From NCBI RefSeq assembly GCF_006345805.1, contig NC_043015.1:39122001-39186000 (forward strand): a stretch of 64,000 nt of DNA. Direction: 5' to 3'. Source of the stretch: Octopus sinensis. Its lineage: Eukaryota. Within the stretch, counting starts at the first letter, position 1, and every line of letters begins with the position of its first letter. This document shows positions 173-63,205 of the stretch, in pieces. Below the pieces are notes generated by a model that was given only the letters and a program-made list of their open reading frames with translations, searched no databases and was not told the DNA's origin. The position numbers and the translations under genes are program-made.

Positions 173-1153
173 ATGTATCTGTGTACGTACACACACACAA
201 TGTGAGGGCACTGGTTCCAGGTTCAATACACACAAATTCAAATCGCAAGATTGTGGAAAAACTAATGACAGTCATTTAAAGTGCTATTTTATGATGTTAC
301 TGTTTACTATGAAAACTGAAATAGTTTCATCGTACATCTAGGACTTGACAGGCATTACAAGTGTTTACTATGAAGTGTGAGCTATTTCTCTCAGACATCT
401 CTCTCGGTCACTGAAATCATTCTAATTGCAGTGGAGTCATATTCAAAACCAAACCTGAAGCTGTCATTTGACTGATTTAATACTGACCAGTGTGTGTCTG
501 TTAACCTTCATTGTATGTCCACAGGTTGGTGAGAAGCAATTTGGGTGTCTGGTGGTAGGTGGAAATGAATGCATGTGATAGGAATTATACCTGGTGTCAC
601 ACAATTTGTGACTGGCTGGTGTTGTTAGATGCCTCACAACTTTCAGCAATAATTTCCCCAATGTTCAAACAAGGCTGAACTTTAGATATGGAGTTGTAAT
701 TCTCTCTCTCTCATACACACTTTAATTCAAAATGTTTAAAATTCAGATAAATTCTTCTTAAAAATTAATTTATGAAACTGTTTTTTTCTGTCCCCCCCCC
801 CCCAACAAAATATATAAAGTCCAAGAATAACCATCATGTGTTGTCCTGTTAAATATATTCCTAATATCAAACTGTTGATATTCCATATGAACATTAGTTT
901 GTGATGACCACTTAGTTGTCCGGTATTTCTGTTAAACAGTATTTAAATTGTTACATAGGGGTGATGAATGTGATTTTAAGGGCACTTGTGAATTTACTGG
1001 TGTAATTAATGTTAATTTAAACCCAAGGGAACTTAATTATAGTATTACTTCATCAACATGGCATTTACTTGATAGTGTCGACTTTGAGTCAAGTTTCCAT
1101 GACTACATCACTGTATTGTGAGAACAAACCAAGTGGACCCGTTTGTATTACTG

Positions 1154-5399: not shown

Positions 5400-5622
5400 A
5401 TACCTATTTCTTTACTACCCACAAGGGGACAAACAAGGACAGACAAACGGATTAAGTTGATTATATCGACTCCAGTGCGTAACTGGTACTTATTTAATCA
5501 ACCCCGGAAGGATGAAAGGCAAAGTCGACCTCGGCAGAATTTGAACTCACAATGTAGCAGCGGGTGAAATACCACTAAGCATTTCATCCAGCGTGCTAAT
5601 GATTCTGCCAGCTTGCTGCCTT
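5400..5622 (-). mobile_element. SINE family A copy
   Basis: Reverse complement of the 27960 element (GAAAGGCAAAGTCGACCTCGGCAGAATTTGAACTC). Confidence 0.8.
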
Positions 5623-11609: not shown

Positions 11610-13345
11610 CATTATCGAAGCAAATTGCAGCGATGGCAGTTGTTCGTGTTTGAAAATTATGAAGAGTCGCAAGCTCTTAAGTGGCTTTGTAGACCAATTC
11701 CCGATTCTTGAGCGACAAGCTCTAAGCACACTTGGGGCAAATATGTAGGTTTTGCTTAGATGGGAGTGTAGCTTTGTCTCGCCTTCTCTGACGTTTCTCA
11801 TCGGCTGTAGATACCCTGGCCTTCTCAGAGCTGCTTGTAGACGTCTGGATGCAATCTCGCCACCCCTCATCCTCTGTGCTGCGACTCCATCAACCCCGCG
11901 GGTTTATCCCGGCTGGGTCAACTGGCGTTTCAGCTGGTCTTTGAAACGCTTCCGTGGGTTGGGGGACTGGTTCCTCTGCTTCTTTGACCTCGGCTGAGAT
12001 GGCCATTGAATACAACCTTCAGAAATGTGGATTTGTCCATGCATGAGACGTGGCCTACCCAACTGAGTTGTAGTGGATTAACTGCCTTGTAGGTTTTGGT
12101 CCTAGTGGACAGATACTGTGCACACTTTTGCAGATGTCCAAAGGTGTTGGCTTCGGCAATGCAACTATCAACGTCCTTTTCAAAGGCTGCGTCTTTGGAG
12201 ATGATACTCGCCAGCGAGGTGAAATGTTTGTCTATGTTAAGAGGAAACCCTTTGATGCTGATCTGCAGTGGTCGGTTTGTAACATTTGGCGGTTTCTGGA
12301 GCAGCGCTTCAATTCCCTTCAGACTGATAGTGAGGTGAAAGGCGTTGGCTGCCTTAGCAAAGCGAGACAAGACTATGTGGAGGGCTACCTCTGTATGTGC
12401 TAGAAGAGCGCAGTCGACAGCAGGATAAGGTTGAATTCCTGCAGAGTCTTTGTGCGAGCAGTCGTCGAAGATTGAATATGTTTCCGTCAGTGCAGACACG
12501 GATGTAGATGCCCTCATGTAAGTCCTCCGTGACCGCCCACAGCATCATGCTGAAGAAGATTGTGTCGGGGCCAGAACACAACCCTGTTTCACGCTGTTCT
12601 CAATGGAGAAGGACTCCGACAGGTTAGTGTTGTACTTGATCTGTCCCGCTGGCTCTCGGGTAGCTGTCCGAGTACAAGGAGGAATATTGGTGGACAACCA
12701 AACCGCTCCAGAATTCTCCACAGCCCATCCCTACTGACCGTATGAAATACCTTTTATTTTTTTAGGTCGATGGAAGCAGTGCAAAGCACCGTGTTTTCTG
12801 TTTGCATTTCTCCTGTATCTGGAAGAAGAGAAATGTCTGTAACATCTCGGTTGGCACAAAAACTACACTGACTCTTGTGAAGGACTTCATCAGCGATGGT
12901 GCGAATTTGTCTTTCAACAAGAACACACGCCACAATCTTGCCTACAATTAAAAGCAGTTTTATGACTCTGTATTTGGGGCACACTGCCCTCACACCTTTG
13001 TTCTTGTACAGAGACACCATTATGGTATTGTGCAGGTCGCTCGGGATTTCTCCTTTCTCCCGGCACAATTTAAAGTGGTCAGTGAGTTTCTCAAGAAGTC
13101 GGTTTCTGCCATGCTTGTATACTTCTGCCACCCACACCAAGAGCCTTGTGAGTCGCTACCTTGAGCCTATCGAAGGGTGGATGGACCAGCGCCTCTTTCT
13201 CTGATATACAGGCAACTGATGCTGCTTGCATTGAGCGTGTCTCCATATAAAACTTGCATAGTGTTCAGGCCAGCGGTGTTTGAGGCCACTTTTCTATCGG
13301 CAGAGCGCAGAGGTGTTTGTGTTTGGTGAGTGGGGTCATATACTG
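11610..13345 (-). mobile_element. Degenerate 5'-truncated RTE-clade LINE (reverse transcriptase region)
   Basis: ORFs 12754-13140 and 11930-12517 give VSLYKNKG, SQCSFCANR..TD, ASIDL, LSWVGHV, resembling RTE LYKNKG..N.RGISLL..SQCGFR..FIDL..WAGHV. Many stops, frameshifts and deletions. Confidence 0.85.
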
Positions 13346-20899: not shown

Positions 20900-20940
<41 letters not shown>

Positions 20941-20987
20941 TATATATATATATATATATAATATGTATATGTATGTATGTATATATG

Positions 20988-21030
<43 letters not shown>

Positions 21031-21352
21031 ATATATATATGTATATGTATGTATGTATATATGTATGTATATATATATATATATGTATGTATGTATATAT
21101 ATTATATATATATAGATATATATATAATATATATATATATTATATATGTATGTATATATATATATGTATATGTATGTATATATATATATGTATATGTATG
21201 TATGTATATATGTATGTATATATATATATGTATATGTATGTATGTATATATGTATGTATATATATATATGTGTATATGTATGTATGTATATATGTATATA
21301 TATATATATATGTATAAATATATATATATATATATATATAGATATATATTTG

Positions 21353-21391
<39 letters not shown>

Positions 21392-21413
21392 ATATGTATA
21401 TATATATATATAT
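20900..21413 (+). repeat. (TA)n/(TATG)n tract, left flank of the ribozyme array
   Basis: Direct reading. Confidence 0.95.
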
Positions 21414-21559
21414 AAAATAAATATAAGAGAGTGGTCACTATATGGCTCACTCTAGCACCAGTTAATCCAAAGGTTTCAACCACGAAAATACATGTTTCCC
21501 ATGAAAGTCAGTACGATTGTTAGCTCACACGGACAGGGCAAATAAAAATAACAAAAATA

Positions 21560-21658
21560 CAGATTATTTTGGGACAATTGTTTCGCTATTAATGAATTAA
21601 ATGTAATTTTACTTACAAAAAAAAAATCCATTTGTAGCTCGTCAGCCAAAACTATCTG
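21560..21658 (-). ncRNA. Type I hammerhead ribozyme (inverted copy)
   Basis: Reverse complement reads CAGATAG-TTTTGG-CTGACGA-GCTA..TAGC-GAAAC-AATT-GTC^CCAAAA-TAATCTG; predicted cut between 21573 and 21572. Confidence 0.85.
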
Positions 21659-22301
21659 GATGAAATCCACTCAATCACACGCCAGATTTTACCATAACGA
21701 TAAATACGCGTGTGGTTCAATTGATTACATCCGACGTTATAATTCAAATGCCCCAACCAACAGCGCGCCAAACTGACGAGCTACAAATGGATTTTTTTTG
21801 TAAGTAAAATTACATTTAATTCATTAATAGCGAAACAATTGTCCCAAAATAATCTGTATTTTTGTTATTTTTTATTTGCCCTGTCCGTGTGAGCTAACAA
21901 TCGTACTGACTTCATGGGAAACATGTATTTTCGTGGTTGAAACCTTTTGGATTAACTGGTGCTAGAGTGAGCCATATAGTGACCACTCTCTTATATTTAT
22001 TTTGTAAAAATATTATAATATGTTATAAAATATTATAATAATCCAGGTTTCTCGGAGCACTAGGCCACTTGGTGTTGAATAGATATACTATTAAATTAGT
22101 ATCTAATTCTCTCACCCTTATTAATTAATTATAATTATGCTGCATTTATTTCTAAATGCTGTATTTGTTTTCCGTGAAAGTTTGGCGCGCTGTTGGTTGG
22201 GGCATTTGAATTATAACGTCGGATGTAATCAATTGAACCACACGCGTATTTATCGTTATGGTAAAATCTGGCGTGTGATTGAGTGGATTTCATCCAGATA
22301 G

Positions 22302-22383
22302 TTTTGGCTGACGAGCTACAAATGGATTTTTTTTGTAAGTAAAATTACATTTAATCATTAATAGCGAAACAATTGTCCCAAAA
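22302..22383 (+). ncRNA. Type I hammerhead ribozyme (array copy)
   Basis: Stem I TTTTGG/CCAAAA, core CTGACGA and GAAA, stem II GCTA/TAGC, stem III AC-AATT-GT, GUC cleavage after 22377. Confidence 0.88.
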
Positions 22384-22836
22384 TAATCTGTATTTTTGTT
22401 ATTTTTTATTTGCCCTGTCCGTGTGAGCTAACAATCGTACTGACTTTCATGGGAAACATGTATTTTCGTGGTTGAAACCTTTTGGATTAACTGGTGCTAG
22501 AGTGAGCCATATAGTGACCACTCTCTTATATTTATTTTGTAAAAATATTATAATATGTTATAAAATATTATAATAATCCAGGTTTCTCGGAGCACTAGGC
22601 CACTTGGTGTTGAATAGATATACTATTAAATTAGTATCTAATTCTCTCACCCTTATTAATTAATTATAATTATGCTGCATTTATTTCTAAATGCTGTATT
22701 TGTTTTCCGTGAAAGTTTGGCGCGCTGTTGGTTGGGGCATTTGAATTATAACGTCGGATGTAATCAATTGAACCACACGCGTATTTATCGTTATGGTAAA
22801 ATCTGGCGTGTGATTGAGTGGATTTCATCCAGATAG

Positions 22837-22919
22837 TTTTGGCTGACGAGCTACAAATGGATTTTTTTTGTAAGTAAAATTACATTTAATTCATTAATAG
22901 CGAAACAATTGTCCCAAAA
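22837..22919 (+). ncRNA. Type I hammerhead ribozyme (array copy)
   Basis: TTTTGG 22837-42, CTGACGA 22843-49, GCTA 22850-53, TAGC 22898-901, GAAAC 22902-06, AATT 22907-10, GTC 22911-13, CCAAAA 22914-19. Confidence 0.9.
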
Positions 22920-23371
22920 TAATCTGTATTTTTGTTATTTTTTATTTGCCCTGTCCGTGTGAGCTAACAATCGTACTGACTTTCATGGGAAACATGTATT
23001 TTCGTGGTTGAAACCTTTTGGATTAACTGGTGCTAGAGTGAGCCATATAGTGACCACTCTCTTATATTTATTTTGTAAAAATATTATAATATGTTATAAA
23101 ATATTATAATAATCCAGGTTTCTCGGAGCACTAGGCCACTTGGTGTTGAATAGATATACTATTAAATTAGTATCTAATTCTCTCACCCTTATTAATTAAT
23201 TATAATTATGCTGCATTTATTTCTAAATGCTGTATTTGTTTTCCGTGAAAGTTTGGCGCGCTGTTGTTGGGGCATTTGAATTATAACGTCGGATGTAATC
23301 AATTGAACCACACGCGTATTTATCGTTATGGTAAAATCTGGCGTGTGATTGAGTGGATTTCATCCAGATAG

Positions 23372-23454
23372 TTTTGGCTGACGAGCTACAAATGGATTTT
23401 TTTTGTAAGTAAAATTACATTTAATTCATTAATAGCGAAACAATTGTCCCAAAA
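23372..23454 (+). ncRNA. Type I hammerhead ribozyme (array copy)
   Basis: Same motif; GUC cleavage after 23448. Confidence 0.88.
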
Positions 23455-23907
23455 TAATCTGTATTTTTGTTATTTTTTATTTGCCCTGTCCGTGTGAGCT
23501 AACAATCGTACTGACTTTCATGGGAAACATGTATTTTCGTGGTTGAAACCTTTTGGATTAACTGGTGCTAGAGTGAGCCATATAGTGACCACTCTCTTAT
23601 ATTTATTTTGTAAAAATATTATAATATGTTATAAAATATTATAATAATCCAGGTTTCTCGGAGCACTAGGCCACTTGGTGTTGAATAGATATACTATTAA
23701 ATTAGTATCTAATTCTCTCACCCTTATTAATTAATTATAATTATGCTGCATTTATTTCTAAATGCTGTATTTGTTTTCCGTGAAAGTTTGGCGCGCTGTT
23801 GGTTGGGGCATTTGAATTATAACGTCGGATGTAATCAATTGAACCACACGCGTATTTATCGTTATGGTAAAATCTGGCGTGTGATTGAGTGGATTTCATC
23901 CAGATAG

Positions 23908-23990
23908 TTTTGGCTGACGAGCTACAAATGGATTTTTTTTGTAAGTAAAATTACATTTAATTCATTAATAGCGAAACAATTGTCCCAAAA
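23908..23990 (+). ncRNA. Type I hammerhead ribozyme (array copy)
   Basis: Same motif; GUC cleavage after 23984. Confidence 0.88.
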
Positions 23991-24443
23991 TAATCTGTAT
24001 TTTTGTTATTTTTTATTTGCCCTGTCCGTGTGAGCTAACAATCGTACTGACTTTCATGGGAAACATGTATTTTCGTGGTTGAAACCTTTTGGATTAACTG
24101 GTGCTAGAGTGAGCCATATAGTGACCACTCTCTTATATTTATTTTGTAAAAATATTATAATATGTTATAAAATATTATAATAATCCAGGTTTCTCGGAGC
24201 ACTAGGCCACTTGGTGTTGAATAGATATACTATTAAATTAGTATCTAATTCTCTCACCCTTATTAATTAATTATAATTATGCTGCATTTATTTCTAAATG
24301 CTGTATTTGTTTTCCGTGAAAGTTTGGCGCGCTGTTGGTTGGGGCATTTGAATTATAACGTCGGATGTAATCAATTGAACCACACGCGTATTTATCGTTA
24401 TGGTAAAATCTGGCGTGTGATTGAGTGGATTTCATCCAGATAG

Positions 24444-24526
24444 TTTTGGCTGACGAGCTACAAATGGATTTTTTTTGTAAGTAAAATTACATTTAATTCA
24501 TTAATAGCGAAACAATTGTCCCAAAA
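24444..24526 (+). ncRNA. Type I hammerhead ribozyme (array copy)
   Basis: Same motif; GUC cleavage after 24520. Confidence 0.88.
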
Positions 24527-24979
24527 TAATCTGTATTTTTGTTATTTTTTATTTGCCCTGTCCGTGTGAGCTAACAATCGTACTGACTTTCATGGGAAAC
24601 ATGTATTTTCGTGGTTGAAACCTTTTGGATTAACTGGTGCTAGAGTGAGCCATATAGTGACCACTCTCTTATATTTATTTTGTAAAAATATTATAATATG
24701 TTATAAAATATTATAATAATCCAGGTTTCTCGGAGCACTAGGCCACTTGGTGTTGAATAGATATACTATTAAATTAGTATCTAATTCTCTCACCCTTATT
24801 AATTAATTATAATTATGCTGCATTTATTTCTAAATGCTGTATTTGTTTTCCGTGAAAGTTTGGCGCGCTGTTGGTTGGGGCATTTGAATTATAACGTCGG
24901 ATGTAATCAATTGAACCACACGCGTATTTATCGTTATGGTAAAATCTGGCGTGTGATTGAGTGGATTTCATCCAGATAG

Positions 24980-25062
24980 TTTTGGCTGACGAGCTACAAA
25001 TGGATTTTTTTTGTAAGTAAAATTACATTTAATTCATTAATAGCGAAACAATTGTCCCAAAA
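24980..25062 (+). ncRNA. Type I hammerhead ribozyme (array copy)
   Basis: Same motif; GUC cleavage after 25056. Confidence 0.88.
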
Positions 25063-25337
25063 TAATCTGTATTTTTGTTATTTTTTATTGCCCTGTCCGT
25101 GTGAGCTAACAATCGTACTGACTTTCATGGGAAACATGTATTTTCGTGGTTGAAACCTTTTGGATTAACTGGTGCTAGAGTGAGCCATATAGTGACCACT
25201 CTCTTATATTTATTTTGTAAAAATATTATAATATGTTATAAAATATTATAATAATCCAGGTTTCTCGGAGCACTAGGCCACTTGGTGTTGAATAGATATA
25301 CTATTAAATTAGTATCTAATTCTCTCACCCTTATTAA

Positions 25338-25343
<6 letters not shown>

Positions 25344-25380
<37 letters not shown>

Positions 25381-25404
25381 TATATATATGTATATATGTA
25401 TATA

Positions 25405-25442
<38 letters not shown>

Positions 25443-25531
25443 CATGTATACCTACCTACATACATATATATATATATATATATATACATATATATATGTA
25501 TATATGTATATATATATGTGTATATATATAT

Positions 25532-25604
<73 letters not shown>

Positions 25605-25620
25605 GCATATATATATGTGT
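25344..25620 (+). repeat. (TA)n tract, right flank of the ribozyme array
   Basis: Direct reading. Confidence 0.95.
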
Positions 25621-27785: not shown

Positions 27786-27959
27786 TAATAAAATATGGAG
27801 AACGATAGACGACAAGAACTAAGGAGAAGGCACAAGGAACATTCTAGACGAGAACAGAAAGTGTTGGCGATGGAATTGTATTATGTGATGGTGTTGGGAA
27901 TGGAGGAGATAGCAGTGTGTTAAGTTTGGTCTATGTGGTCGGCGGTAAGGGTGTATATA

Positions 27960-28195
27960 AAGGCGGTGAGCTGGCAGAGTGGTTAGCACCCCGGGCGAAA
28001 TGCCTAGCGGTATTTCGTCTGCCACTACGTTCTGAGTTCAAATACCGCCGAGGTCGACGTTGCCTTTCATCCTTTCGGGGTCAATAAATTAAGTACCAGT
28101 TACGCACTGGGGTCGATGTAATCGACTTAATACCTATGTCTGTCCTTGTTTGTCCCCTCTGCGTTTAGCCCCTTGTGGGTTGTAAAGAAATAGGT
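27960..28195 (+). mobile_element. tRNA-derived SINE, family A
   Basis: AAGGCGGTGAGCTGGCAGAGTGGTTAGCA (A box)..GAGTTCAAAT (B box)..TTAAGTACCAGTTACGCACTGGGGTCGATG; at least six copies in the window. Confidence 0.85.
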
Positions 28196-29494
28196 AAGGG
28201 TGTATATATGTGTGTGTGTGTATTCGATTATTATAATCCGCGATAATACTATGAAATGGTTATTGTTACCAAAACTAATGACTTCTAAGTATTGAAACTG
28301 TTCCCTGAGATAGTCCTCCATATTGCCTTTCGTCGTCACGTGATATTTCATTAATTAGTTTTAATTCTATTTTGTTATTAATTACCAACATACACTCACA
28401 ATCTTCAGCCTCTCACCCACTATCGCACTGTATCACCTTACTCTGCCTCTTCTACGACTACCGCTGTATCTTCTACTCCTCAGAACGAGCTCATTTCATG
28501 TCATTTCCACCCAGGCCCACCCTGCCAGAACTGGGATTAATCACCACCAACCCGACCACCATAACTATTCCTTCTCCACAACTGCAATCATCAACTTACA
28601 ACTGCCCCAATTTGCGCCATGGGGCGGGAGCTGAATGGAAGGTAGATAGGTTTGTCCACAAAAGATTGGGGAATGGCATAAACGGAAGACAGGAAGATGA
28701 CGGCTAAGCAGCATCATTTCCGTCCAAAGTTACCATTTTTCATCATGACTATACCTTCTGAAGGTGTGGCGATGTGTGATGTGGAGGTGTTTATGTTAAG
28801 TGTGTATGTGTGGTGGAATTGAGAGGGGCTTCTAAATTTACTCACATCATTAACGCACATCATTAGTTTGATAATTACTGGTATATTGAGTGGATATTTT
28901 TTCATGAGGAAATATCGATTGGGTATGGTATGGTCTGTTATAGCATCCAGCGTTGCGGTATGTATATTAGGATAATCTACGTTATAACAAGCTGTAATCT
29001 GGTATCCAAGACGATGCTATTAAATGATGGAGTGTCCAGGGAAGAATAAATAGTTCCACGGACAGACAGACAAATATATTGCTGAAGTCCGTGTTACATA
29101 AAAGAACGGAAAGTTTCCTCTTTTGCAAGGCTGAAGTTATAAACCGGCAAATGAGAATACATTAGACATAATTAAGACACATAACATATAACTGTGGATT
29201 TGTGCAATGATCCGTGACAACACTGTTCCTGTGATTGCTCTCAACCATTAATTCCAAACGATCTGAAAGAAAGCAGGAATGTTACTTTGAAGAATTACTC
29301 ATTTCCAAGTCCGTTCCACAACTAGCAACGGCAAACGTTTTCAGTGTCAAAGAACTAAAATGTTCGAGCGTCGACAAAAAGTATTCAACGGCTGTAAATT
29401 GTTAGAAAATTTTAGCCAGAAAAAGAAACAAGAGAAGATCTAGAAAGAAATAACCGATCGATATTTTCTAAGCTAAACAATGTGAAATTATTTG

Positions 29495-32778: not shown

Positions 32779-33401
32779 TGTATGTATGTATGTATGTATG
32801 TATGACAGATAGACAGATGTGCATGTCTGTCTGTCTGCCCGTAAATATATAAACATACATACACACAACAAAGGTGAGGGCGCATGGTCCTTTGGTTAGG
32901 GTGTTGCATTCACGATTGCGAGATTATGGCTTCAGTTCCTAGACCCGGTGTGTTCTTCAACAAAACACTTCGTCTCACGTTATTCTGAGATCACTTCGCC
33001 ACCTGACATGTGGTATACTGTGAACCTGGCCAAGCGTTGTCGATTTGATAGAGGAAGTGACCTAATGCACGGCAAATACGTTTGCAGCACGTACATATAA
33101 ACAAACCATTTGTTTTCGTGTGAATATTTCTAAATGAAACAGAGACAGCTGACGGAATTCTTAAAACTTCCCGGAGAAGATAGCAGGAAACCTTGATAGT
33201 CATCTGGAGGGCATTTATCCTCAGCCGTCTGAATTGTTGCTCCCAATTATGGTCATCACATCGAGGCAATCATCTTCGTATAGCATCATTGGACTGTTTC
33301 AGGATCTGTCATTAATTGTACACTCTATGTTGACCACAATTAGGAGCAATAATCAAAACACTTGAGGACCAATAATCTCTGGAGGGCCATCATGGTTTCT
33401 T

Positions 33402-33632
33402 ATTTCATCACTACCCACAAGGGGCTAAACATAGAGGGGACAAACAAGGAGAGACAAAGGGATTAAGTTGATTAAATCAACCCCAGTGCGTAACTGGTAC
33501 TTAATTTATCGACCCCGATAGGGTGAAAGGCAAAGTTGACCTCGGCGGAATTTGAACTCAGAACGTAACAGCAGACGAAATACCGCGAAGCATTTCGCCC
33601 GGCGCGCTAACGTTTCTGCCAGCTCGCCGCCT
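33402..33632 (-). mobile_element. tRNA-derived SINE, family A, with 16-bp target-site duplication
   Basis: Full-length reverse copy flanked by GCCATCATGGTTTCTT at 33386-33401 and 33643-33658. Confidence 0.9.
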
Positions 33633-33872
33633 TTATGGTTTCGCCATCATGGTTTCTTGTTCTCTTCTGAGAGTTCTTAGGATCGTTCCAGCCACTGTCT
33701 GCATTTTATTTAGAAATATGCAAATAGAAACACGCATCGTTAGTCATGTTAATGCGTTGGTTGTGTGCTGATTGTGACTCTGGGACTGAAATCCACCCTG
33801 ATCAAGTTTATTTTGTATGAATTTCATTTAACTTTGAGCGCTGATAGCGGTTTTCTTGGAAAATTTCAACAA

Positions 33873-42352: not shown

Positions 42353-42429
42353 CGATGATGATAATGATGATGATGGTGGTGGTGGTGGTGGTGATAATAA
42401 TAATAATAATAATAATGATAATAATAATT

Positions 42430-42655
42430 TATTTCTTTATTGCCCACAAGGGGCTAAACATAGAGGAGCCAAACAAAGACAGACAAAGTGATTAAGTCGA
42501 ATGCATCGACCCCAGTGCGTAACTGGTACTTTATTTATCGACCCCGAAAGGATGAAAGGCTAAGTCGACCTCGGCGGAATTTGAACTCAGAAACGTAACG
42601 GCAGACGAAATACCGCTAAGCATTTCGCCCAGCGCGCTAACGTTTCTGCCAGCTG
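42430..42655 (-). mobile_element. SINE family A copy
   Basis: Reverse complement of the 27960 element. Confidence 0.85.
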
Positions 42656-42756
42656 CTGCTGCTGATGATAATGATGATGATGATGATGGTGGTGGTGATA
42701 ATAATAATAATAATGCATTTTCCAAGGTAGCTCACTTTCACCTTTAATTTTCTGCA

Positions 42757-44284: not shown

Positions 44285-44402
44285 GGGAATAGTCGATAAC
44301 ATCGACCCCAGTACTCAACTGGTACTTATTTCATCGGCCCCGAAACGATGAAAGGCAAAAATCGACCGCGGCGGAACTTAGAAGGTAAAATGCTGCTAAG
44401 CA
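44285..44402 (-). mobile_element. SINE family A partial copy
   Basis: ATCGACCCCAGTACTCAACTGGTACTTAT..GAAAGGCAAAAATCGACCGCGGCGGAA. Confidence 0.7.
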
Positions 44403-44993
44403 TGATTTATTATTACGCTAAGAAGCAGTGCATGGTACCAGAATCTTCGACTCCACTCAAATATAACAGACTCCTTCACATCGTTGTTAGAATATCCGTA
44501 TAAATGGCGTTAAGAACGTCTAGTTTGTAATGGCATCGAACCCGCATACGTTTTAATAATGAAGTTAAACCGACTAGTGAAGTCGTTTAATACGTGTGTT
44601 TCAGATTTGCGTAATAGGTAACAGAAAATGCATCCATTACGTAAACCTTCCTCAGTCAAAGGATTTTCAAATATGAAAGAATTGATGGAAATATATATAT
44701 TGAAATATTTCCATCAATTCTTTCATATTTCTAGCAAAAACTGTCCGACGAACGGCAACGTGAAACTCAGAGTAACAGGTTTTGTGGAATTTTCTGCTGC
44801 TTTAAATAAAGCATATTACTCTACCACTGGTATTTGAGTACTCATTTTTTTCCACTTGTTTCACATTTATGTGTTTACTCTCCGGTATATTATATATATA
44901 TAATATATAGATATATATATATAAGTATATATATATATATATATATTGATAAAAACAGGAGACCCTCGATTTATGTAAATAGAGGAATTTATT

Positions 44994-45225
44994 TGTAAAT
45001 GTAATATGTGACAATTATTCGGTAGCCAAGATAAAACTCCGAGTTTCGGATGCCGAGGTGGAAATCCACCGGGCATCGGAAAAACGCTATGATAACGGAA
45101 TTTTTCATAGCGTTTTTTCCGATGGCCGGATAACTGAAGAGATGGTGGCGTGGATTTCCACCTCGGCATCCGAAGCTCAGATTTTTGTCTTGGCTACCGA
45201 ATAATTGTCACATATTACATTTACA
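44994..45225. mobile_element. Second copy of the same fold-back relic, with nested hairpin and degenerate hammerhead on +
   Basis: Same arm sequence (TAATATGTGACAATTATTCGGTAGCCA..) as 42906. Nested hairpin CATCGGAAAAACGCTATGA/TCATAGCGTTTTTTCCGATG. The + strand has GATAA-CTGAAGA-GATG..CATCC-GAAGC. Confidence 0.6.
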
Positions 45226-45254
45226 GATATATATATATATGTACACACAACACA

Positions 45255-45307
<53 letters not shown>

Positions 45308-45318
45308 ATATATAGAGG

Positions 45319-49958: not shown

Positions 49959-50382
49959 AAATAAGCAACAAGGATATCCAGAGGTAATGCAGTACGATCG
50001 TTTCATGCAGCTCCATTTTATTGAACAATGTAACCATTTCATCAATTTAAATGCAAAGCAACCCTCAGCTTCAAAAAGACATAGAAATTAATTAAATCAA
50101 AACAGATGGACACATTAGTATAATTTTACTTAACATCTCCAAGAAGTTAGGGAGAAGACAAATAACATGCTGCCTTCACTTCAGCTTAGAAGCTTCTAAG
50201 CTGAAGCGAAGGCTGCATTATACTAGTGTGTCCATCTGTTTTAATTTAATTTAATTCTATATCCTTATGCAGCTGAAGATTGCTCTGCATTTAAATTGAT
50301 GAAATGGTTGCATTATTCAATTAAATGGAGTTGCATGAAACGATCGTACTGCATTACCTCTGGATATCCTTGTTGCTTATTT
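49959..50382. repeat. ~420-bp fold-back palindrome with a perfect 28-bp central palindrome
   Basis: 49959-50124 is the reverse complement of 50217-50382 with scattered mismatches; CTTCAGCTTAGAAG|CTTCTAAGCTGAAG at 50179-50206. Confidence 0.85.
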
Positions 50383-51919: not shown

Positions 51920-52510
51920 AGACTCCGCTTACAGTCACTGTCATACAACAATATCAACACTCCGTTTACTGTCACCATCTTACAACACTATCAATACTCC
52001 GCTTACATTCACCATCACACAACAACGTCAACACTCCGTTTACAATCACCGTCACAATAATATCGACACTCCGCTTACAGTCACTATCTCACAACAGCAT
52101 TAACGCTCTGCTTACAATCAACATCACACGACAACAATATCAACACTCCGCTTACAGTCACCATCTCACAACAGCATCAACACTCTGCTTACAATCAACA
52201 TCGCACAACAACAATATCAGCACTCCGCTTACTGTCACCATTACACAATGCCAAACACCGTTTACAGACACCATCTCACAACAATATCAATTCTCCGCTT
52301 ACAATCAGCATCACACAACAGCAATGTCACCACTCCGTTTACAATCACCACCACATAGCAATATCAACACTCCGCTTACTGTCATCACCACAACAATATC
52401 AACACTCCGTTTACAATCACCATCGCACAACAATACCAACACTCCGCTTACAATCACCATCACCCCTCACATTAACAATATCATGACTCCCCTTACAGTC
52501 ACTATCATTT
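51920..52510 (+). repeat. Degenerate ~37-39-bp minisatellite (ACACTCCGCTTACAGTCACCATCTCACAACAATATCA)
   Basis: About 15 diverged copies; explains the spurious 201-aa ORF at 51907-52512. Confidence 0.85.
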
Positions 52511-55619: not shown

Positions 55620-56028
55620 TGTAACACCACTCAAATGTGGAGTGTAACAGAAAAGTAACAGGCCAACTGTAACACCACTCAATTGTGGAGAGTAACAGAA
55701 GAGTAACGAACTAATTTGTAACACCACTCAAATATGGAGGGTAACAGGAGAGTAACAGACCAACTTGTAACACAACCCAAATGTGGTGTGTAACAGAAGA
55801 GTAACAGACCAACTTGTAACATCACTCAATTGTGGAGAGTAACAGAAGAGTAACAAACTAATTTGTAACACCACTCAAATATGGAGGGTAACAGGAGAGT
55901 AACAGACCAACTTGTAACACAACCCAAATGTGGTGTGTAACAGAAGAGTAACAGACCAACTTGTAACACAACTCAAATGTGGAATGTATCAGAAGAGTAA
56001 CAGACCAATTTGTAATACCACTCAAATG
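55620..56028 (+). repeat. 49-bp minisatellite x ~8.4 with a 147-bp higher-order repeat
   Basis: Units start at 55620, 55668, 55717, 55766, 55815, 55864, 55913, 55962 and 56011; units 2-4 match units 5-7. Confidence 0.9.
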
Positions 56029-62562: not shown

Positions 62563-62993
62563 GTTGTGTGTGGTGTGTGTGTGTGTGGTGTGTGTGTGTG
62601 TAGCAGTGACATACAGACAAGTAATCTTAAATATTTTATGCAGATGGTACCAAGACAAAGGCGAATCTGTTGAATACTTGTTAAGCAGTGTATATAGAAG
62701 AGAATAATACATATACAGACAGACGAGGGTGTTTAATAGAGAACTGAACAGATATGATAGGAGAAAAAGGGAGAAATTGATGTCTGGAGAGAAACCATTC
62801 TGACTTTCAGCTAAAACATAGGAATATATTTCTCGTAGAACTCTGAAGAACTTTTACAGAATCAGGAATCAGAAGCGATTTTGAATACATTTCTGGTGTT
62901 TTTCTGATTATCCAAATGTATTATCAAAGACGTTCTATCCATGAACATCCTGTCTTATGGTACTCAGGGACACTGTATTGTCTAATGTGTCAT

Positions 62994-63205
62994 TAAGGCG
63001 ACGAGCTGGCAGAAACGTTAGCACGCCGGACGAAATGCTAAGCGGTATTTCGTCCGTCGCTACGTTCTGAGTTCAAATTCCGCCGAGGCCGACTTTGCCT
63101 TTTATCCTTTCGGGGTCGATAAATTAAGTACCAGTGAAACACCGGGGTTGATGTAATCGACTCATCCCCTCCTCCAAAATGGCTGCCCATGTGGCAAAAT
63201 GTGAA
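62994..63205 (+). mobile_element. SINE family A copy
   Basis: TAAGGCGACGAGCTGGCAGAAACGTTAGCA..GAGTTCAAATTCCGCCGAGG. Confidence 0.85.

Follow-up and report, generated by a model that had tools for sequence, protein, structure and literature searches.

A 64,000-nucleotide stretch of the Octopus sinensis genome (NCBI RefSeq assembly GCF_006345805.1, contig NC_043015.1, positions 39,122,001 to 39,186,000 of the forward strand; hereafter the window, with positions counted from its first letter) contains a tandem array of hammerhead ribozyme motifs. Judged from its sequence, the locus is likely to represent a single young insertion of a retroelement that carries hammerheads but is not autonomous, namely an animal non-long terminal repeat (non-LTR) retrozyme with a 536-nt unit. 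By analogy with published insertions, this retrozyme was probably mobilised by a Penelope-like element. The insertion consists of a forward head-to-tail array (21773-25343, plus strand) and an inverted, 5´-truncated partial unit (21414-21772, minus strand), and the resulting 3.93-kb block interrupts a (TA)n-rich microsatellite.

The forward array comprises 6.67 units of 535-536 bp each. With the unit start set at the C of CUGACGA, the units begin at 21773, 22308, 22843, 23378, 23914, 24450 and 24986; their lengths are 535, 535, 535, 536, 536 and 536 bp, followed by a partial unit of 358 bp. The array starts at C3 of the hammerhead core and ends at consensus position ~358, inside an A/T-only patch. 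Alignment and unit comparison of the seven forward copies revealed four variable columns, all of which are one-base indels within runs of at least two identical bases. No substitution was observed among the forward units, or across the whole 3.9 kb when the inverted copy is counted, suggesting a single recent event; this lack of substitutions is also compatible with smoothing of the assembly consensus. The element is apparently very recent and possibly still active. The unit consensus has 536 bp and a GC content of 32.5%. It is non-coding, with a longest stop-to-stop frame of 69 aa when the multimer is read through. The unit is a simple periodic repeat with no terminal repeats besides the units themselves; no search was aimed at motifs of the primer-binding site (PBS) or the polypurine tract (PPT). 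All-A/T patches are confined to consensus 234-271 and 347-367, together 11% of the unit, and each unit carries an A/T-only imperfect palindrome, AAATATTATAATATGTTATAAAATATTATAAT, at consensus 240-269 (e.g. 23617-23646). The array was overlooked by Tandem Repeats Finder (TRF) because the longest period of that program is 500.

The core CUGACGA...GAAA...GUC is present in all eight copies of the hammerhead. On the plus strand, the predicted GUC^C cut sites follow C17 at 21843, 22377, 22913, 23448, 23984, 24520 and 25056, with cut-to-cut distances of 534, 536, 535, 536, 536 and 536 nt. Six plus-strand hammerheads are complete, consecutive and spaced one unit apart. They were matched by a type I descriptor at 22295-22390 (C17 22377, with a 1-nt deletion within an insertion in loop 2), 22830-22926 (C17 22913), 23365-23461 (C17 23448), 23901-23997 (C17 23984), 24437-24533 (C17 24520) and 24973-25069 (C17 25056). 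The first forward hammerhead (21773-21856) was missed by the descriptor. Its core (at 21773), helices II and III and C17 (21843) are present, but the 5´ strand of helix I is absent, with acagcgcgccaaa upstream in place of cagatagttttgg, and thus only six plus-strand motifs are complete. Since this hammerhead is incomplete in cis, its GUC would be cleavable only if it formed a domain-swapped dimer with the unit that follows. The eighth hammerhead, a complete descriptor match, is carried by the inverted copy on the minus strand (21658-21560), with C17 at 21573 and a predicted cut between 21573 and 21572.

A previous sequence-only reading of this stretch described about 6.7 near-identical non-coding units of ~536 bp, each with a complete hammerhead. 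The unit number, near identity and lack of coding capacity agree with the present analysis (6.67 forward units of 535-536 bp that differ by indels only; longest frame 69 aa), and the seven proposed cut positions are exact, each being the C of a GUC. The invariant core is indeed found in every unit; completeness, conversely, is limited to six plus-strand motifs, the first having lost the 5´ strand of helix I. The start of the array at 21414 has to be moved to 21773, as the stretch 21414-21772 is an inverted partial unit. The inverted copy, the minus-strand hammerhead and the (TA)n target had escaped that reading.

The motif of the unit, cagauaguuuugg-CUGACGA-GCUA-CA-[AAUGGAUU UUUUU UGUAA GUAAAA UUACA UUU AAUUCAUU]-AA-UAGC-GAAA-C-AAUU-G-UC^ccaaaauaaucug, has the core and the helices of a type I hammerhead at the sequence level. 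All invariant core residues are present (C3-A9 = CUGACGA; G12-A14 = GAA; A15.1-U16.1; C17, where any base but G is allowed), together with the G10.1-C11.1 pair. Helix I has an open end and is formed by seven proximal base pairs (one G-U), an A-A mismatch and five further base pairs. Helix II has 4 bp (GCUA/UAGC), and helix III has 2 bp (AC/GU) capped by a palindromic AAUU loop; the ACAAUUGU segment is a perfect palindrome. This three-helix layout was found in six plus-strand copies and one minus-strand copy, and the helices are identical in all copies. Loop 2 contains an inserted hairpin of ~40 nt. The CA/AA(UA) residues on either side of it correspond to consensus loop 2 in the Rfam alignment. 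However, loop 2 is split by the hairpin, and helix I offers only an A-A mismatch and a G-U pair. A tertiary contact between loop 1 and loop 2 is needed for hammerhead activity at physiological Mg2+. The architecture is close to that of canonical metazoan type I hammerheads, in which helix I has 6 bp, helix II 4 bp and helix III 1-2 bp with a palindromic loop of 2-4 nt, and which can also function dimerically within tandem repeats (PMC4209133). A helix III of 2 bp closed by a tetraloop has been termed 'similar to invertebrate HHRs' (hammerhead ribozymes; PMC7229834).

The frequency of such motifs by chance was estimated on first-order Markov sequences. A relaxed type I descriptor (100 simulations) gave 0.01 matches per simulated 64-kb window with both strands counted, and a stricter descriptor that requires the palindromic helix III element (300 simulations) gave 0.003. 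These values correspond to ~3e-5 to 8e-5 matches per 536-bp unit on both strands. When 126 nt were compared with Rfam, the full RF00163 (Hammerhead_1) model (1-45) was aligned at 23372-23454 with 30.1 bits and E = 4.3e-6 over 4227 families. In this alignment, a 40-nt insertion falls between the CA and the AAUA residues of the consensus loop 2. For the 106-nt motif, folding predicts helices I and II as the ribozyme needs them, at a minimum free energy (MFE) of -27.5 kcal/mol (z = -5.1). When the cores are kept unpaired, a dimer that exchanges its helix I strands and builds an 8-bp intermolecular helix III is predicted at -55.0 kcal/mol, compared with -58.8 kcal/mol for the unconstrained dimer.

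The plus strand of the 536-nt unit was also folded as a circle permuted to the cut site, and both strands were compared with shuffles. The plus-strand circle has a predicted MFE of -151.4 kcal/mol versus a mean of -106 in shuffles (z about -8), with 67% of the bases paired. The corresponding values for the minus strand are -111 and -80 kcal/mol (z about -5 to -6). In this folding model, the ribozyme-bearing plus strand is the more structured strand, and the predicted 536-nt circle agrees with the reported 'highly self-paired' nature of retrozyme circles (PMC7229834, PMC7761336).

The inverted copy (21414-21772, minus strand; local alignment and BLAST) corresponds to consensus 410-536 followed by 1-~232. 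It differs from the doubled consensus only in homopolymer lengths and is covered by BLAST high-scoring segment pairs at 21645-21399 and 21774-21646. The 3´ end of this copy points outward, into the left (TA)n. Since this part of the unit consists of A and T only, the outer boundary can be placed no more precisely than 21399-21414. At the inner side, the inverted copy meets the forward array head-to-head, 5´ end to 5´ end, with a 2-nt overlap CT at 21773-21774. In the junction sequence ...cgcgccaaa|CT|gacgag..., CT can be assigned to either copy (microhomology). Consensus 1-232 thus occurs in both orientations and forms perfect 232-bp inverted arms separated by a 127-nt spacer (21414-22004). 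The matches to Rfam microRNA families from the permissive 4.2-kb search, MIR4208 in this region among them, are artefacts that stem from the (TA)n tracts and from the hairpin of these long inverted arms. 

The microsatellite interrupted by the block was called by TRF at 20902-21425 on the left and at 25343-25616 on the right; judged by the boundary sequence, the (TA)n/(TATG)n target occupies 20902-21413 on the left and (TA)n continues over 25344-25616 on the right. The outer ends of the insertion lie at consensus ~232-246 (inverted copy) and ~358-362 (forward array), both inside all-A/T patches, which could pair with a (TA)n primer. The A/T palindrome at consensus 240-269 coincides with the patch where the cDNA of the inverted copy apparently started. 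Some 115-125 nt of unit sequence lie between the two outer ends, and there is no defined 3´ terminus from which a 30-40-bp tail could be measured. The position where the ribozyme cuts (consensus 71|72) coincides with neither inner end and is crossed seven times by the forward cDNA and once by the inverted cDNA. The template therefore lacked a free 5´ terminus at this position and was not a cleaved linear monomer, but a circle or an uncleaved multimer. It is only the ribozyme efficiency and the abundance of circles published for invertebrate retrozymes (PMC7229834) that would favour the circle, the template assumed in the sequence-only reading.

The element displays every testable feature of an animal non-LTR retrozyme. 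The working definition of this class is at least two consecutive units, each with a complete type I hammerhead (Li et al., 2026; bioRxiv 10.64898/2026.07.22.740005), and six consecutive complete motifs are found here; the unit is also low in GC (<45-50%), non-coding and LTR-free. Metazoan non-LTR retrozymes (PMC7229834; bioRxiv 10.64898/2026.07.22.740005) are likewise low-GC non-coding head-to-tail repeats with one type I hammerhead per unit. They further resemble the octopus element in the highly self-paired predicted circle, the array of ~7 units, the helix III of 2 bp with a tetraloop and the proposed mobilisation by Penelope-like elements. The ~40-nt hairpin inserted in loop 2 is a difference. 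Published consensus lengths range from 51 to 972 bp, and 75% of the families have seven or fewer units per array (bioRxiv 10.64898/2026.07.22.740005). The length of 536 nt, which the sequence-only reading took to be long for an animal retrozyme, exceeds the range of the 2020 study (150-450 bp / 170-400 nt; PMC7229834) but falls within that of the 2026 survey, and is thus not exceptional. The assignment of the element to this class by the same reading fits every feature that can be tested in the sequence, and its suggestion of Penelope-type mobilisation appears strengthened, by analogy, by the inverted 5´-truncated copy and the (TA)n target (PMC8557442, PMC11167929). Consistent with its remark that it knew of no description of this family in octopods, searches of the available paper collection retrieved no description of retrozymes or hammerheads in octopus or cephalopods. 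A 2026 repeat annotation of Octopus vulgaris counts 30 Penelope families as recently active, their insertions at ≤2% divergence numbering 329, and makes no mention of hammerheads or retrozymes (PMC13282606). The retrozyme class itself has already been described; what is unusual here is the ~40-nt hairpin in loop 2 and a cleanly readable double-primed insertion.

The unit of the cave-cricket (Dolichopoda) satellite pDo500 is roughly 500 bp long, which sets a precedent for a unit of the present length. Together with newt satellite 2 (~330 bp) and Schistosoma Sm-alpha, it shares with the octopus array the arrangement of tandem repeats with a type I hammerhead, and these satellites are transcribed and processed by the ribozyme (cited in PMC7761336). 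The CA...AAUA residues of loop 2 in the unit fall on the Schistosoma-like consensus GUCC-CAAAUA-GGAC in the Rfam alignment. Whereas the classical hammerhead satellites are high-copy and diverged, the octopus locus is a single 6.7-unit array with no substitutions, and its insertion junctions are clear. Similarity also extends to plant LTR retrozymes and viroid-like circular RNAs (PMC4918200), which are non-coding, ribozyme-bearing, highly structured and several hundred nucleotides long, the circle being only predicted in the present case. A circular RNA has been proposed as the retrotransposition intermediate of plant retrozymes (PMC4918200). Unlike the octopus unit, however, plant LTR retrozymes have type III hammerheads in their LTRs, a PBS and a PPT, 4-bp target-site duplications and a GC content >55% (PMC4918200).

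The closest match to the architecture of the insertion is provided by Penelope-like elements (PMC4209133, PMC8557442, PMC11167929), which occur as tandem copies in (TA)n microsatellites, with an inverted 5´-truncated copy abutting their 5´ end, and whose pseudo-LTRs carry type I hammerheads with a palindromic helix III element able to dimerise. Insertions of these elements include tandem or partial-tandem copies with an inverted 5´-truncated copy next to the 5´ end; they are biased towards microsatellites, and (TA)n is a preferred target of Naiad elements (PMC8557442). By this analogy, the combination of tandem array, inverted 5´-truncated copy and (TA)n target matches the published Penelope-like insertion signature. 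The unit differs from these elements in having no reverse transcriptase (RT)/GIY-YIG open reading frame (ORF), its longest frame being 69 aa. It is therefore not itself a Penelope-like element, despite showing their insertion architecture, and would be at most a non-autonomous derivative or passenger. The hammerhead is also distinct from the 'minimal' Penelope hammerhead (helix II 7-8 bp, helix I 4-5 bp, no helix III), being of the canonical type, in which helix II has 4 bp and a true helix III exists. No 30-40-bp 'tail' of the kind seen in Penelope-like elements was identified in this insertion.

A possible life cycle of the element and origin of the locus can be outlined from the locus anatomy and the published biochemistry of Penelope-like elements. 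The plus strand of an array would be transcribed as a multimer, and each type I hammerhead would cut after the GUC (C17), acting singly or within a domain-swapped dimer whose two members pair through their palindromic ACAAUUGU segments and thereby form an 8-bp helix III. In the resulting monomers of 535-536 nt, a host ligase of the RtcB type would join the 5´-OH and 2´,3´-cyclic phosphate ends, giving a circle with extensive base pairing. A Penelope-like RT/GIY-YIG endonuclease supplied in trans may then have cut both strands of the (TA)n microsatellite, and each 3´-OH may have primed internal reverse transcription at an A/U-only patch of the template, which would be the circle or an uncleaved multimer. 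One cDNA would have covered 6.67 laps and the other 0.67 lap, and the two cDNA 3´ ends would have been joined via the 2-nt microhomology, placing the inverted 5´-truncated copy head-to-head with the tandem array. For a purified Penelope-like protein, cleavage and extension have been shown on both DNA strands, in contrast to R2 or L1, and its reverse transcription begins at an internal position of the template (PMC11167929). We tentatively propose that the locus keeps both products of one Penelope-type integration of retrozyme RNA, that is, opposite-strand cDNAs that were linked through a 2-nt microhomology after one of them had gone round a 536-nt circle for 6.67 laps; this full sequence of events is possible, though we would not yet call it probable.

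The same anatomy can be obtained from the same element and enzyme if the template was an uncleaved multimeric linear transcript, or if the RT switched templates between monomers, with no closed 536-nt circle. The anatomy needs only a template that is continuous over the cleavage site. In vitro, the substrate that predominates for the Penelope-like protein is unprocessed RNA and hammerhead cleavage is unnecessary for insertion (PMC11167929), and autonomous Penelope-like elements insert as tandems with no known circular intermediate (PMC8557442). A 7-mer of at least 3.6 kb would, however, have to escape seven consecutive self-cleavage sites, and invertebrate retrozyme hammerheads are reported to be efficient, with accumulation of monomeric circles (PMC7229834). 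Such a template is rather doubtful, while deserving serious consideration. It is improbable that the locus is an ordinary minisatellite or satellite that grew at the DNA level through unequal crossing-over, through replication slippage or from extrachromosomal circular DNA that replicated as a rolling circle and re-integrated, the hammerhead being left over from an old retroelement or pseudo-LTR (pLTR) and by now irrelevant or inactive. Concerted evolution can homogenise arrays and would also give near-identical units, only one locus is visible in the 64-kb window, the Rfam score is sub-threshold, and local amplification of retrozyme-derived repeats as satellites is discussed by Li et al. (bioRxiv 10.64898/2026.07.22.740005). 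Unequal exchange nevertheless leaves unexplained the substitution-free inverted 5´-truncated copy with its head-to-head 2-nt microhomology, as well as the placement of both outer ends in A/T-only patches against (TA)n. The strong plus-strand-biased RNA structure and the intact core in eight of eight copies further point to selection in the recent past or to a functional RNA having been copied recently.

Two explanations concern the reality of the signal itself. Mis-assembly of long reads or chimeric reads could have produced the copy number, the inverted junction or both; all unit differences are in homopolymer length, which is typical of long-read consensus error, and complex tandem or inverted Penelope-like structures often trouble assembly (Craig et al., PMC8557442). 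A simple fold-back sequencing artefact at the inverted junction was rejected, as the junction is asymmetric and the arms of consensus 1-232 are split by the 127-nt spacer. The inverted copy is also continuous into the unique left flank via the microsatellite. Such an artefact is very unlikely, and it would change the counts but not the existence of the unit and its ribozyme motif. Hardly credible is a chance occurrence of a hammerhead-like motif in an AT-rich repeat that is no ribozyme. In its favour, the curated Rfam threshold was missed, the loop 2 insertion is atypical, and a match at 44655-44591 (minus strand) that has no Rfam support shows that the relaxed descriptor can give doubtful matches. 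By contrast, only 0.003-0.01 chance matches are expected per 128 kb scanned, and the Rfam E-value already covers the 4227 families. Features beyond the first descriptor were also found (G10.1-C11.1, GUC, the extended 12-bp helix I and the palindromic helix III), and low-GC tandem repeats are the known genomic context of such ribozymes.

Several observations weigh against interpreting the locus as a young retrozyme insertion with a functional ribozyme. The Infernal comparison with Rfam Hammerhead_1, which the sequence-only reading had put forward as a check, stayed 4 bits under the family gathering threshold (30.1 versus 34 bits). No Rfam hammerhead match was obtained at the gathering threshold in the whole window, or in permissive searches of 4.2 kb and of 316 nt; the match is lost once at least 316 nt are searched because of the Infernal filtering. 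The loop 2 insertion probably accounts for both the shortfall in score and the filter losses. The ~40-nt hairpin in loop 2 is itself atypical, and helix I offers only the A-A mismatch as a 'loop 1'. In addition, the unconstrained fold of the motif pairs the core GACGA with UUGUC and is 4.6 kcal/mol better than the fold with the core kept unpaired (-22.9 kcal/mol). The homopolymer-only differences between the units resemble long-read consensus errors, and the copy number therefore hinges on the assembly. A target-site duplication is unreadable within the microsatellite. No homologue was found in the window, in metagenome or viral contigs, in the assembly collection or by protein searches, and hence no dispersal of the family was seen. 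Nor was a Penelope-like ORF recognised among the 20 ORFs of the window that were compared with Pfam. With no autonomous Penelope-like element beside the array, any enzyme would have acted in trans.

The searches for relatives covered several sources. No second copy of the unit occurs elsewhere in the window. An exact scan of metagenome and viral contigs with the gapped core pattern gave 0 matches, and an exact look-up of the two ATG ORFs of the unit in the assembly collection retrieved nothing. A chimeric query of all ten unit frames of ≥28 aa, meant to catch spurious ORF calls on related repeats, had 0 matches among 5.8 billion proteins, and the hammerhead core sequences, used as text strings in the literature, had no match.

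The neighbourhood of the array is non-coding DNA rich in microsatellites and repeats. Pfam searches of 20 ORFs (10 across the window and 10 around the array) gave nothing significant, and no tRNA was called by ARAGORN. Decayed RT-like ORFs of 204 aa and 133 aa, neither of which is reported by Pfam, are located at 11933-13155 (minus strand). The 204-aa ORF (11933-12544, minus strand) matches ENA proteins in which Pfam RVT_1 is found, the best match having 53% identity and E = 4e-23, and the region is probably a relic of the long interspersed nuclear element type. A dispersed repeat of ~240 bp has five copies, at 5401-5622 (plus), 27957-28196 (minus), 33400-33637 (plus), 42429-42659 (plus) and 62991-63170 (minus), with a mean column identity of 82% and a further fragment near 44300-44400 (minus). 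In reverse orientation, this repeat contains a tRNA-like segment (...GAGTTCAAATTCCGCCGAGGTCGAC...), in which ARAGORN found no tRNA, and it looks like a tRNA-derived short interspersed nuclear element family. A pair of minisatellites is located at 51922-52463 and 55620-56028. One is C-rich with 37-bp units (14.6 copies, 74% matches) and yields a spurious 201-aa ORF; the other has 49-bp units (8.4 copies) and a higher-order period of 147 bp at 93% matches. The sequences at 44895-45314 and 49959-50382, ~420 bp each, match their own reverse complements at 74% and 81% identity and are large imperfect palindromes or fold-back-like sequences. The second match of the relaxed descriptor in the window (44591-44655, minus strand) consists of CUGAGGA, a helix II of 12 bp closed by a 20-nt loop, then GAAA, a helix III of 2 bp and the site GUA. 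It was rejected as support for a hammerhead, having an A at 10.1, a non-palindromic helix III, no Rfam match in 131 nt and a single copy; it is probably a chance match, though only 0.01 are expected per window.

Animal non-LTR retrozymes are thought to spread via small circular RNAs copied by Penelope-like enzymes, and the published link between the two consists of co-occurrence, a shared ribozyme type and pLTR similarity. If the reconstruction proposed here is correct, the octopus locus would add, beyond co-occurrence, direct structural evidence for rolling-circle reverse transcription of animal retrozyme circles by Penelope-like machinery. The readable junctions of this substitution-free insertion show the layout expected if the enzyme cuts and extends both strands and initiates internally. 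It would also bring retrozymes to a lineage without a prior description of them, with a hammerhead variant that tolerates a hairpin of ~40 nt in loop 2; a natural hammerhead with such a large loop 2 insertion would provide material for structure-function work. A read-through transcript of the 232-bp arms would form a long double-stranded retrozyme hairpin, which, speculatively, could feed small-RNA silencing of the family. The locus offers a concrete, testable picture of retrozyme integration and a place to look for ribozyme-processed circles of ~536 nt.

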